This document shows, piece after piece, positions 5,960 through 52,880 of a stretch of 64,000 nucleotides of DNA. Where the stretch lies: contig NC_087472.1 in NCBI RefSeq assembly GCF_036321535.1, positions 82,336,001 to 82,400,000 on the forward strand, in the 5' to 3' direction. The notes under the pieces are model-generated. The model was not told where the DNA came from. It did not search any database and worked only from the letters and a program-made list of their open reading frames with translations. How positions within the stretch are numbered: position 1 is the first letter of the stretch; each line of letters starts with the position of its first letter. The DNA is from Camelus dromedarius (lineage: Eukaryota). A program made the translations under genes and the position numbers.

Positions 5960-6540
5960 CATATATAAAGTTATAGATAGGTCGGGGGACCTACAGAGAA
6001 AAACAAAAACAAGAAATCCCCACTTGAGATAAGTGTTTAAATGAAAATTTCAAAACACACAAGGGAAAATTAACATCCCGAAACAAACTCAATAGATAGG
6101 AAATTTGGTCTAAAGAAAATGGAAATAATAGAAAAATCTGAAAGGGATTTCAGAGTCCTCAGAAAGAGAGAGAGAAGGGCTAACATTCATAGAATAAGAG
6201 GCTCTTCTATTCAATAAATGTTGAAAAGTCCTTAAGAGGGCATGTGCGTGTGTGTGTGTTTGGAATCAATATGGCCAAGTTGAAAGATAATATCGAGGAA
6301 CCAATACAGAGCAAAGCACAGTTAAACAGAGATGATAAGTATGAAAGAGAAGCTAAAAGTCATGGAAGCCACATTGAGAATATCCAACATACATAAACAG
6401 AATTCTAGAAGTATAGAGGGAGTGATGAAGAGGGGAGACCTTACTCAAAAAAATAATTGTCCAGAACTTTCCCAAACTGAAGAAAGACTGTCCCCATCAG
6501 ATAGAAATAAGGTTTGGGGAAGAAAATCACTAATCCACTT
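5960..6540 (+). mobile_element. Degenerate L1 ORF1 region
   Basis: The 6332-6553 ORF (MKEKLKVMEATLRISNIH...) resembles the L1 ORF1p MEDRSRRSNI segment. A-rich sequence. Confidence 0.55.
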
Positions 6541-6824
6541 TTGGATCATCTGAGTTTGTGGTGACTGTGGGACACCTACCTGTAGATGTCCAGTACCAGC
6601 TGCGCCATATGGATCTGGCCCCCAGGAGAAGACTTTGGGCTAAAGGTGGAGTTTAGGAGTTGTAACCAGTAGGACAGGGCCCTTTTCACCTCTTGGCACC
6701 TCAGTTTCTACCCTACCAACTTGTAAGAATGAAATGAAGTGTGGAAGTACTCTGATAATCAAAACTAGTTGGTCTTATCTTGTCATCATTGTCATTACCA
6801 TAAATTCTGTTTCTTGTAGCGCCT

Positions 6825-7055
6825 CAGGACTAGAGGGTAAGAGCTGGGATTCTGGAGCCAGATTGCTTAGATTCCGCTGCTTTCTAACCATGCGACCTTG
6901 GACAAGTTATATAACATTTGTCTTGATCCTCAATTTCCTCATCTGTACCTTTCTCTTTGTGTTGTTATGAAGATTAAATAAGTTATTACATGTAAAGTCT
7001 TAAAATGGCACTTAGTGTGTGGTTAAATGCTCAGTAAATCTTTGCTGTTAGCTAT
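6825..7055 (+). mobile_element. MIR (near full length)
   Basis: aagagctgggattctggagccag...gaccttggacaagtt...tttcctcatctgta...tacatgtaaag...ctcagtaaat. Confidence 0.85.
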
Positions 7056-7219
7056 TAACTTATCTGCATTTCACAGGAACCTTCAGTATCTTATCCCAGA
7101 GGAATGACTAATATGAAAATCATAGTCTATGAGGATAATAAATTTAGATATCTGTGTGTTCCTGTAATACTCAAAGGATCTTTCTAGTTAACTGCTGACT
7201 TTTATTTGTCTACATGCGG

Positions 7220-7386
7220 AGTTTTGTTGCTGTTTGCAAATTGGCTGTAATGTTATCTGAACATTCAAGAACTCCTTTTTTTTTTTTGTGAGGTTTGAAA
7301 CTTGGAAATAATTTATGGGCATATGGAATCTTCTCGTGAAGGCATAGTAATGGTTCCATTTTTCTTGTTAAACTTAATCTTAGGCA
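7220..7386. repeat. Inverted repeat, left arm (~167 bp)
   Basis: Reverse complement aligns by hand to 8334-8498 with 8 substitutions and two 1-nt gaps (~94%). Confidence 0.95.
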
Positions 7387-8333
7387 GATACCTATGATTA
7401 TACCTCTGTTTTTGTTAATGTCTCTAGATTTATTAATACCAACATTAATATTTTTATGTTAGCTAGGAACTCGCCTAGAAGTAAGAATTATACCAGCCAG
7501 TTTGATTTCAGAGTGCAAATGGCAGTAAAATGAAAACAGAAAATCAATAGTTAACTGTGTGATGATTTTTTAATCCCTGGTGTGTTTGCTCAAGATGAGA
7601 TCATTTTCCAGATTAGCCTACCTTCCTCATCTGCAAGACCGCATCAGAGTCTGGCATGATTATTTACAGTTCTTTAGATGTTCTGTGAGACAAACAGGAC
7701 ATGCCAGGAACGGAACTGTCAAAGAATGACCCTGAACCTTTGCGTTCCACAACTGACTCGAAGAAGCATATTGCAGTTGTCATACCTGCATCATTTGGAG
7801 GTGTTCTCCCTCCTGTAGCCCAGGAGCTTGACTGCTGGTGCTGGCAGGGACTGCATTGAGGGACCTGCCTCCACATGAAGAGAAGGCTTTAAGGAGCAGG
7901 TAGGAGAACTGTATTTCTAGAGGGAGGAAGTAGAAAGAAGAGCTAGAGAGACTTACAGAGGATCATAGATGTAACTCCCGTGTACCAGAGTTACAAGAGT
8001 TTACATAGGACAGAAAATAAACTGATGCAATGATTGTGATCCGTTCGGTGTTGAGTGGCAGAGGTTCTGTCTCAGCTCCCACCTGTGAAAGTAAGAATAG
8101 ATCAGGGGTCTAAGTAACTTTTAAAAAAGTAAATAGAAAAATATGTTTAAACTAGCTGAACTAATACATCCAGTAGATAAAGACTTGCATGTAAGGTATT
8201 TGCACAATAATTGTGTTTTTTTTTTTTTTTTTTTTAGAATTAGTGAAGTTAAAAGATTTGGGGAAAGAAGGCAGGGTAGAAAAGAGAGAAGTTCAAGTAC
8301 CTGGGCCTGTGGACACTTTGCCCTGTGCCTAAG

Positions 8334-8498
8334 TGCCTAAGATTAAATTTAACAAGAAAAATGGAACCATTACTATGCCCTCAAGAGAAGATTCCATATG
8401 CCCATAAATTATTTCCAAGTTTCAGACCTCACACAAAATAATAGGAGTTCTTGAATGTTCAAATAACATTACAGCCAATTTGCAAACAGCAACAAACT
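8334..8498. repeat. Inverted repeat, right arm (~165 bp)
   Basis: tgcctaagattaaatttaacaagaaaaatggaaccattactatgcc...gcaaacagcaacaaact is the reverse complement of 7220-7386. Confidence 0.95.
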
Positions 8499-9005
8499 GA
8501 AACCATATATAGTAACCGATGTCTTAGAGGAACTCTGTAGACCTCTTGCTGCGAACAGAAACAAGGTTAGCTTGGAAACTTAGTTCCTCTCTAGCACCAC
8601 GAAACCCTGTCTGTCTCCTGGTCAGATGGAAAATAAAGCACAAGTGAGGTTCTCTTCACTTGTGAGGATTTGCAGTAATTTTTTTGCAGTAGTTTTTTAA
8701 AAGCCTCATGAAGAAGTAGAATATCACTATCCTTTAAACAAACTACATAAGTCCACGTTAGAGCAAGGGACAAGTATAACCTCCTCCTTCAAAAGGGTGA
8801 GCAGGGAGCATGGGGTTGTACAGGGGACCGCGAATCAAGTGGCTGAGGTTCTAGTCCCATCTGCCGTGAATTAGCTACTGACCTAAAGCAAGCCTTTCCA
8901 TTAAACTTCTAGTTCTAAAATTTGGTGACATGACTGAGTGTGATTTCTAAATCTGAAGGCCCCTCCCCTTTTGTTTTTTCCTTCAGAGCTTTAACTGAAA
9001 GAGAA

Positions 9006-9008
<3 letters not shown>

Positions 9009-9038
<30 letters not shown>
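9009..9038. repeat. (GT)15 microsatellite
   Basis: Read directly from the sequence. Confidence 0.98.
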
Positions 9039-9039
<1 letters not shown>

Positions 9040-9269
9040 GGAAGTTGGGGAGGTGGGTGTTTAGTAGTGAGCATTAGTAGTGAGAACACTGAGGCAAACA
9101 GTGAAGTTCCTAAAAAACAGAGCACGTTGTTGCTCACAACTGTCTTGCTTTATTTTCTGGGAATTTCAGAAAACCACACAGAGGGGCATCTTAACATAAA
9201 CAGCTAATCCAGAGGCCTGCTGCTGCTGCTGTTTTAGGATTATTTGCCATCTCTTGTAGCTGGTTTCCT

Positions 9270-9288
9270 CATCCACTAGGAGGCGCCA
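9270..9288 (+). promoter_or_regulatory. CTCF-like motif
   Basis: catCCACTAGGAGGCGCca, one mismatch to CCASYAGRKGGCRC, CpG retained. Confidence 0.4.
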
Positions 9289-9839
9289 TTGTCAAACAGC
9301 ACTTGGGACAAAAGCTCTTAGTCCTTTAAGCAAGAAATGGGTGGTAAATATAAGACCTTGGAAATGGTGAGAAATCAACCTCTGATATCTAGAAAGGCAT
9401 TAAAACAATACTCAGCTTCTAAAACTTGATCAACACTATCTTAGACCACATTTCAATTTAGAAGTGGCAATTTTTTTCAAGCCAGTCCTCTTTCAAAGAA
9501 TCAGAATTCCATGGGGGTATTAAGAGACTTTAGAGATTACTGAATCAAATCCCATCAGTTTACTGAGCAGTAATTGTCAACCCAGAAAGGTTCAGTAGCA
9601 TAAGCTAGGTCCCACAGGCAGTTACAGATAGACTTGAGAATAAACCCATATGTAGGGGTCATTTCTCATTATTCTTGGGTGTCCAACATCTGAAACCTCT
9701 TCCAGTATTTGGAGAGTCTCCCATCTAAAGAGTCTTGTTGGAGGACAAAGCCAGCCTTCTACTATAGAAGCTAAAATTGTTGGGTATTTGCTCTCCTTGG
9801 CAGTTAGGATATGGGAATATGACATAGGTTTCATGAGTC

Positions 9840-16316: not shown

Positions 16317-16480
16317 TTAAATTTTATTTTATTGAGTTATAGTCAGTTTACAATGTTGTGTCAGTTTCCAGTGTAGAGCACAATTTTTCAGTTATACATG
16401 AACATATATATATTCATTGTCACATTCTTTTTCACCATGAGCTACCACAAGATCTTGTATATATTTCCCTGTGCTGTACA
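16317..16480 (-). mobile_element. Young 5'-truncated L1 3' end (camelid-type) with 15 bp TSD
   Basis: attgagttatagtcagtttacaatgttgtgtc... Perfect TSD tacctgttcattttt at 16302-16316 and 16481-16495. Confidence 0.85.
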
Positions 16481-21489: not shown

Positions 21490-22910
21490 AAAATGTGTCA
21501 TGGCCAAAAGATCCCATTTATAATAGCAACTAAACATATAAAATGCCTTGTGGGGGAAACTGAACAATCAATATTTGGAACCAGTATGAAGAAAGCCTTA
21601 AAACTATAACTTAGAAACAAAAGGAATTGGAGGGATGTATCATGTTCATCGATGAGAATATTAGGAAAATGTTCATTTCTACAAGTTAATCTATAAATGT
21701 AATGCTATCTCAGCCAAGATAGAAAAAGATTTTAGTGCTTGAGAAACTGATTTCAAAGTTCAACTGGGAGAAAAAATTAAGAAGAAAATGTTGATGAAGA
21801 ATAATAATGAAATGAGACTTATTTTGCCAAATATTTGAATACACTACTACAGATTTATAATGATATGGGACTAGATACAAGAACAGACAGTGAGAAAGAG
21901 TAGAAAGCTAACAGTGCACTTGTATGTGTGTATACACATGTAGAAATTGTCATTTCAAGTACTAGTATTTCGGATATGACCAGGAAAAATGGATCGATTC
22001 ATGCTGGTAATTGTAGCACAGGGCAGTAAGTGATTTCCAGTTACTGCTCACTGACAGTTTCACTCCTTAAGTATTGGCCTGTCACCACTTTACTATCTTC
22101 TCCCACCCCAAGACTTTTTTCCCCCTTCCAGGTGCCTCCAAAAAAGCCTTCCTCTAGCTCTACGGATTCTTATTGCTCTATGATACAATCAATTTACCGC
22201 TCTCCTTTGCCTCTTTTCTTATCTAAGTTGAATAGTGCTTATCCTTGCATTCTGCAATTAAAAGAGAAAAATGCCTAAAGAAAACTGTGATTCCCTCATT
22301 AGGAGGTGATTTTGGTCCTTATAGATAACCAACCAGCCTAAACTGCAGCCAGCTTTAAAAATGGTGCTTTTTTCTCCCCTCAAAATACAAAGCAGTGAAG
22401 ACTATTCAGCCTCTTTAGTAATTAAGAAAATGCAAATGAGAGCAATCATGAGTGACTTTTTCTTCCTCCTATCTGATTGGCAAAGATTAAAAAGAATAGT
22501 CATCCGAGTAGAGGCAAGGTAGAAGATAGAACATTTTCACATTCACTAGTGGCAGTATAAGTTGGTAAAATTTGTCTAATAATGTGTGTATCTAAAGTAT
22601 TATTGTATATACAAGATCTTATGGTAGCTCACGGTGAAAAAGAATGTGAAAATGAATATATGTATATTCATGTATGACTGAAAAATTGTGCTCTACACCG
22701 GAAATTGACACAACATTGTAAACTGACTATAACTCAGTCAAATAAAAAAATTTTTTTTTAATTTTTTGAAGTATTATTGTATATGCCCCTTGCTCTAGCA
22801 ATTCCGCTTGTAGGACTTGTACTATAGCAGATGATCAGGGTTGTTCACAAAGACGCGGTCATGTTCATCCAGGCTTTATTTGTAATGACAAGAAAATGGG
22901 TACTGCCATA
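21490..22910 (+). mobile_element. Old L1 ORF2 fragments, interrupted by the young L1 at 22611-22768
   Basis: cccatttataatagcaac..., aagttaatctataaatgtaatgc..., attaagaaaatgcaaat...cctatctgattggcaaagatt. Confidence 0.6.
22611..22768 (+). mobile_element. Young 5'-truncated L1 3' end (camelid-type) with 16 bp TSD
   Basis: About 92% identical by eye to the reverse complement of the 16317-16480 element. Perfect TSD aagtattattgtatat at 22595-22610 and 22769-22784. Confidence 0.85.
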
Positions 22911-24520: not shown

Positions 24521-24679
<159 letters not shown>

Positions 24680-29585: not shown

Positions 29586-29717
<132 letters not shown>

Positions 29718-31049: not shown

Positions 31050-32040
31050 GTTTTTTAAAATTGAGATATAATTGACATATAACAGTTTCAGGTGTACATC
31101 ATAATGATTTGATATTGTATACACTGAAATGATCACCACAATACGTCTAGTTACCCTCTGTCTCCATACAGAGTTACAAAATATGCAGTATCATATTAAT
31201 GACTACAGTCACTATGTTGTACATTATATCCCTATGACATTTATTTTATGACTGGAAGTCTGTATCTCTTACCTTCTTTGCCCATTTTGTCCCCCTCAAC
31301 CCCCTTCCTCTCTGGCAACTACCATTCTGGTCTCTGTGTCTATGAGTTTTGTCTTGTTTGTTCATTTGTCCTGTTTTTTAGATTCAGTGTATAAGTGAAA
31401 TCATAAGGTATTTGTCTTTCTATATTTGATTTATTCACTTAGCATAATACTCTCAAGATCCATCCATGTTGTCACANNNNNNNNNNNNNNNNNNNNNNNN
31501 NNNNNNNNNNNNNNNNNNNNNNNNNNNNNNNNNNNNNNNNNNNNNNNNNNNNNNNNNNNNNNNNNNNNNNNNNNNNNNNNNNNNNNNNNNNNNNNNNNNN
31601 NNNNNNNNNNNNNNNNNNNNNNNNNNNNNNNNNNNNNNNNNNNNNNNNNNNNNNNAATTAGTGTGCTTTCNNNNNNNNNNNNNNNNNNNNNNNNNNNNNN
31701 NNNNNNNNNNNNNNNNNNNNNNNNNNNNNNNNNNNNNNNNNNNNNNNNNNNNNNNNNNNNNNNNNNNNNNNNNNNNNNNNNNNNNNNNNNNNNNNNNNNN
31801 NNNNNNNNNNNNNNNNNNNNNNNNNNNNNNNNNNNNNNNNNNNNNNNNNTGGTAGCCATTCTGACAGATATGAAGTGATATCTCATTGTGGTTTTGATTT
31901 GCATTTCCCTGATGATGAGTGATATTGAACATCTTTTAATATGTCTATTGTCCATCGGTATGTTTTCTTTGGAAAAATATCTATTCAGATCCTCTGCTCA
32001 TTTTTTAATCAAATTTTTTGGCTTTTGTTACTGAGTTGTA
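31050..32040 (-). mobile_element. L1 3' end (L1MA-like) containing N-runs
   Basis: tttaaaattgagatataattgacatataac... Minus-strand translation [27 protein letters not shown] is the L1 ORF2p C-terminus. Confidence 0.88.
31477..31849. other. Assembly gaps: 179 N, a 15 nt island, then 179 N
   Basis: N at 31477-31655 and 31671-31849, around aattagtgtgctttc. Confidence 0.98.
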
Positions 32041-34826: not shown

Positions 34827-35013
34827 CAGCATCTCTCAATAGCCACAGACATNNNNNNNNNNNNNNNNNNNNNNNNNNNNNNNNNNNNNNNNNNNNNNNN
34901 NNNNNNNNNNNNNNNNNNNNNNNNNNNNNNNNNNNNNNNNNNNNNNNNNNNNNNNNNNNNNNNNNNNNNNNNNNNNNNNNNNNNNNNNNNNNNNNNNNGG
35001 TTGAGACCCATTG
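34827..35013. mobile_element. Probable hAT MITE (MER5-type) whose interior is a 146 N gap (34853-34998)
   Basis: Ends cagcatctctcaa and ttgagacccattg resemble hAT terminal inverted repeats. 187 bp span. Degenerate 8 bp TSD tcatagta / tcataatg. Confidence 0.45.
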
Positions 35014-50445: not shown

Positions 50446-52724
50446 TTCATTTAATGTGCTTGTGATTGCAATGTCCTAACTAGATTTTTATATTTTTTTC
50501 CTTAAGTATAGTGCATTGGCTCTTCCTTGGGGATTAATATAGTATGTGTACCTCAGAGTTCATTGTTTCTTGGATAATATCCAAAAAGAAAAGGGATACC
50601 CACTGTGCTCCACTCGGGTCTTGGAGCTATTATTTTCTTTTGATTATTTCTTACTTTTAATACACCTTTTAATATATCATGAATTCATGCTGTTTCCTTT
50701 GTACTCTTTAATCCTCTGTAAATAGCTCTTTCTTTTCTATTTCCAGAATACTAATCTAGCTTTTCAGTAAAACTAGAAGAAAAGTCTGTCTGCTAACTTG
50801 ATCCTAAGAACTGGGTGATTAATTGACATCTGCAATAGTAGAGTGTAAAAGGGTATAGAAAGATGATGAGTCTGGCTTGCCCCTTTGGTAGCTTCCCCCC
50901 CACCCCCCCATGCCAAGTTGTGCTTAGTACTGGAGGTTTAGTAATTTGCAGGATCACAAATGCCAACTGTCAGAGCATGAGACCCTCATTTACTTACTTA
51001 GCTGACTCCTCTCACTACTTGCCACATATATTTGGAACTCTATAATCAGTCTGCACAAGAGCTGACCCTGTGTGTTCCAGTGTTTTTCAAGTCTCACTGG
51101 CCACAAAGGGGAACTGAATATGAACATGCATGCAAACCTCATCAGTTCCCTTTGCAACCAGCTGAGCGTTGTTTTTAATGTAGCAGAAACAGTGTTCTTC
51201 TTTTGAATACAAACCAAATTTCCACACAAATAATGAAGCATTTCTGCTTCTGACAGATCAGGGGACACATAAGAGAAAAGGGTACTAAATTGTGAGACAG
51301 GCAATTAAAAGAGAAAGTCAGAAAATAAGAGGTAAAACTGAATTGGGGAAGAGAAAGAGGTGATGCTGAGTACAGGAAAGGGAAAAAAAAAAACGGGTGG
51401 GAGGATTGAGGACACTAGAAAGTTGTGGTGGGTGATACAACATGAGAAGAGGCAGGAAACGTAGAAAGGAAATGTCTGTAACAGGAAAGGGTCTGTAACA
51501 GCATTGCCAGCAGCGTTAATGGAAGGCATTCAAATCTTTTGGTCCAGAAGTTTGTCACTGGATAAAATGTAAAAATATAGCACATCAGAATGATTACCAT
51601 TCCCACCTGAGTTTATGCTATTGAGTCAGTTTTACAACGAAGGTGCCTTGTCCCCATTTCAGGATGCAGTGCGGTGACCTGTTTGACCACTCTGATTACA
51701 GAGAACGAAGCCAAGTGTCAGAAAGCAAAGAAACCTTAGCACCTAATATAAATGTCACAAAGCTCCCAAAATCCATCAAATTATTTTAGATAAAGTTTAA
51801 ACAGACTCTCTAGCTGTAAATATTAATGAATGCCTATGGTGTGCTGAGCAAGGAGCAGGGGCCAAATCCACTACAAAAAAAAAAAAACTCTGGGAAGCTG
51901 CTTGGGGACCATTGACCATACAACAAGCAGACTCCCTCCTCCACCCCCACCAGCTGTACCCACCTGAGTAGCCCTGAGGGCATGACTGTGTTGGTACAAC
52001 CTGATGAAGCAACAAGATCCCAGGTGGCCCCTGGTTGCCACTCATTTTTAAGGTGTTGACTGTTCTGTAAAACTCAAAACTTCTATTAAAGGAATCTAAA
52101 GAACATCTCATCCAAATTTTACTAAATGCTCGAAATGCTTTGTTACCCTCCCAGCCTGCTGAGGACTCATACTATATTGGAACAGGTCTACTAGCAAACG
52201 ACTCACTGGCTTTCTATTCCATTTGAGATCTGCAATTGTTAGAATACCCTCTCCTACAATCTGGTGAAACATGCTGCTTGCAATCCTCATCCTTCACTGG
52301 TCCTCTTTCAGCTCGCTCCCTGCAGCTACGCACATGCACATTTTTGCACAGATGTCTTTCCTTTAGCCTTCTGCTTTAATCCCATTCTTTCAAACTGTCC
52401 TTCTTCTGGTGTCCTCTCCTCTTCTACTTGCTCAAGTTTCAGAGTATGCTTCTGACTCACACAAAATAGAGTGGGTCTGCTACCGTGCCTGTCCTGGACA
52501 GTGCTATTGGCAGTGAAAGCTGAAGTTCAGTTCCCCATTGTAAGTGCCTCCCCCCGCACTTCATTCGACCCAGGTCAGCTTCCACTGTGTAGCTTCCTAG
52601 TTCTGATGTTTACCTTCAGCTTCTGACCATTCCATTGTATTATTTCCCCTGCCTTTCCCTGGCATTTGAGTATTTCAGTAACATACATTGAATGTTTCCT
52701 ACCGGCCAGGAACATTTATTCACT

Positions 52725-52880
52725 CATTCAGTCTTCATAACAACACTACGAGTTAGGTACTCCTATTACTCTTGTTTTCTCAGTAGAGGAAAGAGAGCTT
52801 GTCCAAGGTGACATAGTAAGTGGTGGAGCCAGAAATTGGACTCAGGCAGTCTGGCTGCAGCAGCTGCCCTTTAACCTGTC
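52725..52880 (-). mobile_element. MIR
   Basis: aacaacactacgagttaggtactcctatt...ttgtccaaggtgacatagtaagtggtggagccag. Confidence 0.8.

Follow-up and report, generated by a model that had tools for sequence, protein, structure and literature searches.

Introduction

In human patients, the spacer between a fold-back inverted duplication and its template measures 766 bp to 70 kb, with 2-8 bp of inverted microhomology (Hermetz et al., 2014, PMC3907307). Snap-back synthesis at breaks, which creates longer inverted repeats, has been described in flies and yeast (PMC5728401, PMC11724301), and fold-back inverted duplications also result when a single break close to a hairpin-forming sequence is repaired (PMC8755829). 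In template-switch hairpins, a replication error leads to copying of the opposite strand close by, and a perfect inverted repeat arises in a single step (Loytynoja and Goldman, 2017, PMC5453318; PMC8794818). By a different route, staggered breaks in Drosophila leave the breakpoints of inversions marked by inverted duplications (Ranz et al., 2007, PMC1885836). At the level of RNA, intronic inverted repeats are the main substrates of hyper-editing (PMC5663115).

Here, we analyze a pair of inverted arms in an intron of CASK, within a 64-kb stretch of camel DNA (hereafter, the window). As in the patient cases (PMC3907307), what we take to be an inverted copy sits beside its template across an unduplicated spacer of about 1 kb, and the ends of spacer and template share 8 nt of inverted microhomology, against 2-8 nt in patients. 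Those events, however, copy megabases and end in dicentric chromosomes, whereas here the break would have been resealed. As in snap-back SD-MMEJ and fold-back insertions (PMC5728401, PMC2943611, PMC11724301), the putative copy joins a longer inverted repeat; documented snap-back inserts are mostly tens of nucleotides long (5-34 nt) and come from templates nearer the break, whereas the copy proposed here would be about 160 nt long and templated 0.95 kb away. Like template-switch hairpins, the locus can be read as a nearby copy of the opposite strand that yielded an inverted repeat in a single step, but those hairpins fall in the range of tens of nucleotides (PMC5453318; PMC8794818), against an arm of 165 nt and a spacer of 947 nt at this locus.

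Results and discussion

Geometry of the inverted arms

A preliminary description of this DNA reported an inverted repeat at 7220-7386 and 8334-8498, and global alignment with flanks returns exactly these coordinates. The alignment holds 157 matches, 8 substitutions (4 transitions and 4 transversions) and two 1-nt indels, at 7222 and 7276, the same number of differences as had been counted by hand. When 6500-9500 was compared with the whole window by blastn, slightly narrower arms were recovered (7223-7386 and 8334-8496; 164 columns, 94.5% identity, E 2.7e-68), which the global alignment including flanks widens to 167 nt on the left and 165 nt on the right. A repeat search divides the same similarity into two collinear inverted blocks, 7279-7386/8334-8441 and 7223-7284/8435-8496, at 94-95%. 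Both blastn and the global alignment confirm the 947-nt spacer, and the arm boundaries are sharp, with similarity breaking off abruptly at all four edges. The features discussed below are collected in Table 1.

Table 1. Coordinates of the inverted arms and associated features in the window.
Feature	Position	Strand	Remarks
Left arm, 167 nt	7220..7386	+	Proposed template (original copy); T12 run at 7276-7287; last octamer CTTAGGCA at 7379-7386
Spacer (loop), 947 nt	7387..8333		G+C and CpG content similar to the remainder of the intron
Uninterrupted T22 run	8216..8237	+	In the spacer, 96 nt ahead of the right arm
Period-8 tandem G-TGCCTAAG-TGCCTAAG	8325..8341	+	Straddles the spacer/right-arm junction; unit 1 in the spacer, unit 2 in the arm
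Right arm, 165 nt	8334..8498	-	Reverse complement of the left arm; proposed derived copy
CASK exon, residues about 94-118	24602..24676	+	Match to CASK kinase-domain chains, E 3e-11
Next CASK exon, residues about 119-143	29625..29699	+	Match to CASK kinase-domain chains, E 1e-12

Within the spacer, the middle portion (7651-8110) has a G+C content of 46.5%, compared with 32-35% at the spacer ends and 32-33% in the arms, and is followed by an A-rich stretch at about 8118-8145. This middle portion could be an old insertion within the loop.

Genomic context

The preliminary description had placed the arms in CASK, and this assignment is borne out by two plus-strand exons that match solved CASK kinase-domain chains, with the match spanning all 25 residues of each. 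As both exons lie on the plus strand, this is the transcribed strand, and the arm structure therefore sits in a CASK intron on the sense strand. The next CASK exon, encoding residues about 94-118, lies 16 kb downstream. Comparison of the whole 64-kb window with itself yielded only four repeat pairs at E < 1e-6, and this stretch of the CASK intron is thus unusually poor in young interspersed repeats. The window also holds three runs of N, at 31477-31655 (179 nt), 31671-31849 (179 nt) and 34853-34998 (146 nt).

A junction octamer and a possible fold-back origin

The left arm is closed at its inner end by the octamer CTTAGGCA. Its reverse complement, TGCCTAAG, occurs at the end of the spacer (8326-8333) and again at the start of the right arm (8334-8341), so that the two units stand in tandem across the junction. 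There are only three further non-microsatellite 8+8 tandems in 63 kb, and two fixed sites would show an 8-nt inverted match by chance with a probability of 2e-5 to 7e-5; on these grounds, it is very improbable that the octamer is independent of the event that formed the arms. The spacer/right-arm junction is thus likely the repair joint, with the octamer as its mark.

We tentatively favor, at a probability of about 0.45, a one-off local inverted duplication produced by faulty DNA repair or replication, rather than a mobile element. In the sequence of steps that we infer, a break would have formed, or a fork stalled, just to the right of present position 8333. The resected 3' end would then have folded back onto its own strand, about 0.95 kb upstream, where pairing of 8326-8333 with 7379-7386 would have provided the microhomology for priming. 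Extension by about 160 nt on the template 7220-7386, copying from 7378 down to 7220, would have produced a reverse-complement copy, the right arm, without changing the ancestral orientation of the spacer. Finally, the break would have been resealed; the arms may since have drifted apart, and the structure would ride passively in the CASK pre-mRNA. A fork could have stalled at the T22 run of the spacer.

In favor of such a fold-back, the arms form a single, sharply bounded pair and lack a target-site duplication, a tail, a tRNA-like part and any Rfam or Pfam match. The octamers at 7379-7386 and 8326-8333 form an exact 8-nt inverted match, the second of them belonging to the tandem at the junction, and the inverted copy lies near its presumed template across a spacer that is not duplicated. 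The tandem itself stands against it, as two octamers are found at 8326-8341 where a single one is expected. A one-step fold-back predicts one junction octamer, so that additional slippage or re-priming would be needed, unless 8 nt were duplicated at the stem base afterwards; fold-back thus fits the octamer only with one extra step. The length of the proposed copy and its distance from the template, both greater than in most documented snap-back inserts, also count against a fold-back. A comparison of composition skew bearing on the orientation of the spacer gave a lnLR of 0.7 for the spacer and about 0 for the left arm, values that do not discriminate.

The preliminary description had offered three models: a micro-inversion, a pre-mRNA stem and a transposon with long terminal inverted repeats (TIRs). 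Its layout of the arms, their edges and the lack of a target-site duplication (TSD) all stand, and the arms do form one long stem in silico; none of the three models is proven, and a fold-back or template-switch copy with an uninverted spacer was missing from among them. If the locus did arise in this way, it would represent a natural fold-back or template-switch copy in the kilobase range that was resealed and became fixed in a mammalian germ line. It would occupy a size class between the tens-of-nucleotides inserts of snap-back experiments and the megabase fold-back duplications of patients. Such a local duplication would also mean that transposons are not required for long dsRNA to arise in introns. 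Most likely, the locus is an ordinary structural scar, left by a mutation of a familiar type whose size is unusual.

Divergence of the arms

The arms differ by a K2P distance of 0.050, and the 95% interval of p runs from 0.021 to 0.093. At rates assumed to be 1.0-2.2e-9 per site and year, this corresponds to about 11-25 My, and we take the duplication to be roughly 10-25 My old, an estimate that carries a wide error and would be a minimum if gene conversion has acted. The arms would then be older than the Camelus species, and their origin would fall near the split between Old World and New World camelids, about 16 Ma (PMC12337305). On this divergence, the structure would be expected in every species of Camelus. 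The amount of divergence is about what drift at a neutral rate would probably have produced.

A staggered-break micro-inversion as a possible alternative

An alternative that we regard as unlikely is that the segment was flipped by a staggered-break micro-inversion, as in the model of Ranz et al., which would leave the spacer reversed relative to the ancestor. Here, two nicks about 165 nt apart, together with a break at the other breakpoint, would be followed by fill-in, end joining and re-insertion of the segment in inverted orientation. The A-b-C-b'-D layout of unique, non-repetitive sequence is the exact product of this model (PMC1885836), and non-repetitive sequence is indeed found as an inverted duplication at both ends of the segment. 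The resemblance to the Drosophila cases extends to the material duplicated, which is ancestrally unique sequence inverted at both segment ends and belongs to no repeat family; unlike the present locus, those cases are chromosomal inversions of tens of kilobases to megabases (PMC1885836). By our derivation, an ancestral order of A-rc(C)-b'-D also gives the observed octamer count, one inverted and two in tandem, with no extra step.

This saving comes at a price, in that the ancestor must already have borne an exact 8-nt inverted repeat abutting both breakpoints, for which the chance is 2e-5 to 7e-5. With the other polarity, an 8+8 tandem would have to be nicked exactly between its units, at about 5e-5 per site. 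Moreover, a staggered-break inversion calls for three or four lesions within 1.3 kb, versus a single break for fold-back. The mechanism is documented for large Drosophila inversions, and we found no mammalian precedent at the kilobase scale. Weighing these points, we judge a fold-back copy more likely than a staggered-break inversion.

Evidence bearing on a possible transposon or repeat-family origin

We consider it improbable, and more so than a staggered-break inversion, that the structure is transposon-derived, either as opposite copies of a young interspersed repeat or as the long TIRs of a non-autonomous DNA transposon spanning 7220-8498. The arms do have the form of TIRs, being inverted, 165-167 nt long and 94% identical. 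The TIRs of mammalian elements are usually far shorter than this. To our knowledge, no known motif matches the termini AGTTTTG...CAAACT. We also know of no DNA-transposon activity in the camel lineage at about 10-25 My, which, set against the estimated age of the arms, weakens the transposon model.

Other hallmarks of transposition were not found in the window. The preliminary description had seen no flanking TSD, and this holds for a TSD of any length, both at 7219/8499 and around either arm; the flanks, ...CATGCGG on one side and GAAACCAT... on the other, show no direct repeat of 2-10 nt whatever the register. By blastn, no third copy of an arm was found in the 64-kb window, and relaxed blastn together with nhmmer detected no diverged copies of the arms or the spacer there. 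The arms bear no poly-A or A-rich tail and contain no tRNA-like part. Rfam gave no match in the arms or the spacer, and none of the nine ORFs (38-78 aa) from the arms, spacer and flanks matched Pfam, so that no transposase remnant was seen. With no TSD, no third copy in 64 kb and no Pfam, tRNA or Rfam match, the long-TIR model of the preliminary description is disfavored. A SINE or LINE pair finds no better footing, given arms with no tails, TSDs or tRNA-like part and no other copy in the window. In addition, both arms start and stop at identical positions, which independently truncated insertions would not do. Arm 23-25-mers were found in none of the metagenome contigs or genome contigs searched, a result that has no bearing on copy number in camel. 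A protein search with the arm ORF returned no homologue, and ten ORFs of the region were absent from the protein collection.

Two candidate repeat identities were tried and rejected. For a retro-copy, the minus strand would be read through the right arm and a further 96 nt into A22, but there is neither a polyadenylation signal nor a TSD, and those 96 nt have no counterpart behind the left arm or in the rest of the window. A resemblance to MIR or another SINE, judged by eye, was unconvincing and was set aside.

That opposite repeat copies can resemble each other is illustrated by the only other high-identity pair in the window, an observation in favor of a transposon origin. This pair (16322-16463 and 22606-22747) lies in the same intron and is inverted, 142 nt long, 93% identical and separated by 6.1 kb, and presumably corresponds to the conserved 3' region of artiodactyl L1, which it resembles. 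One of its copies runs on beyond the shared block into L1-like sequence and the other stops, as would be expected of two independent insertions. Pfam gave no match in the ORFs of this pair. As RNA, it too would form a long duplex, at -203 kcal/mol.

Older repeats are sparse around the arms. A diverged pair at 6839-6993 and 52712-52873 (minus strand) was detected by nhmmer (E 2.5e-7), with a 49-nt core at 80%, and 6839-6993 is the only ancient repeat detectable near the arm structure. It lies off the junctions, and no old repeat was found to span an arm junction. The only Rfam match at E <= 1 is a weak one to SCARNA7 at 8902-9064, outside the arms and spacer, with 21.8 bits where the gathering score is 65 and an E of 0.016; as it overlaps a (GT)15 microsatellite at 9009-9038, it is most likely a chance match.

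The arms as a predicted RNA stem

In silico, the minimum-energy fold of sense-strand 7200-8520 pairs the arms end to end, and the arm duplex alone amounts to -247 kcal/mol. The transcribed plus strand would carry a long intramolecular duplex of the kind that ADAR acts on. Like inverted Alu pairs (PMC5663115), the arms would give an intron of the pre-mRNA a long intramolecular duplex that is nearly perfect, although, unlike Alu pairs, they do not behave as members of a repeat family. From pairing over the full length of the arms, it is a fair prediction that this stem of about 165 bp would be edited by ADAR in the CASK pre-mRNA.

A more far-reaching reading, to which we assign long odds, is that this is a non-repeat intronic dsRNA specific to the camel lineage, in a neuronal X-linked gene, that is heavily ADAR-edited, switches spacer orientation among individuals, or both. 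If so, a de novo RNA hairpin or an invertible intronic cassette would have been born in a single template-switch event. The preliminary description had likewise raised the idea that the spacer is still flipping by recombination between the arms. The differences between the arms, however, are scattered over their full length and leave a longest perfect tract of 40 nt, and the length quoted for efficient homologous recombination is 50-250 bp (PMC8755829). With its longest tract below that length, ongoing flipping or conversion is unlikely.

We consider it very improbable that the stem is a selected RNA element, kept because its editing or the looping of the spacer tunes CASK splicing or expression. 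The full-length stem as minimum-energy fold, the stability of its duplex and the prominence of intronic inverted repeats among hyper-editing substrates (PMC5663115) all speak for selection, and seven RNA-labelled runs contain 0.47-0.70 of the 31-mers sampled from 7150-8560, although RNA contigs cannot separate pre-mRNA from DNA carry-over. Against it, all eight substitutions and both indels break pairs, none being compensatory by construction, and the divergence of the arms is that expected of neutral drift. The pre-mRNA stem proposed in the preliminary description survives as structural potential only; its control of exon use is left unsupported, as the loop yielded no CASK-coding exon and 16 kb separate the structure from the next exon. 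Nothing that we found suggests a function. Most likely, the structure is a neutral scar in a large intron, and there is no sign of an effect on CASK.

Presence in public sequencing runs

Sequence of the region 6800-8900 is present in 20 public runs from 12 studies. Among these, 14 DNA-type runs, which account for 8 of the study codes, contain 0.91-0.93 of the sampled 31-mers, shares that are uninformative on spacer orientation, as an inversion between inverted arms makes no new 31-mers. One of the 14 bears a second organism label, and one may be the source run. For the narrower interval 7150-8560, six DNA-type runs, two of them not among the 14, contain 0.87-0.90 of the sampled 31-mers. With most 31-mers present in 14 DNA-type runs, the sequence by this measure does not appear to be private to one assembly.

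That one arm was made by a chimeric or fold-back read is scarcely credible: 7-13% of the sampled 31-mers are missing from DNA-type runs, which counts in favor of an artefact, but in artefactual palindromes, unlike this pair, the arms are nearly identical and no 947-nt spacer intervenes, the arm differences are chiefly substitutions (8, against 2 indels), and the words of 6800-8900 recur across runs from eight study codes. By our estimate, the T22 run, the T12 run in the left arm and a single SNP would together remove about as many words as are missing. The T22 run is a likely cause of 31-mers being absent from short-read contigs.
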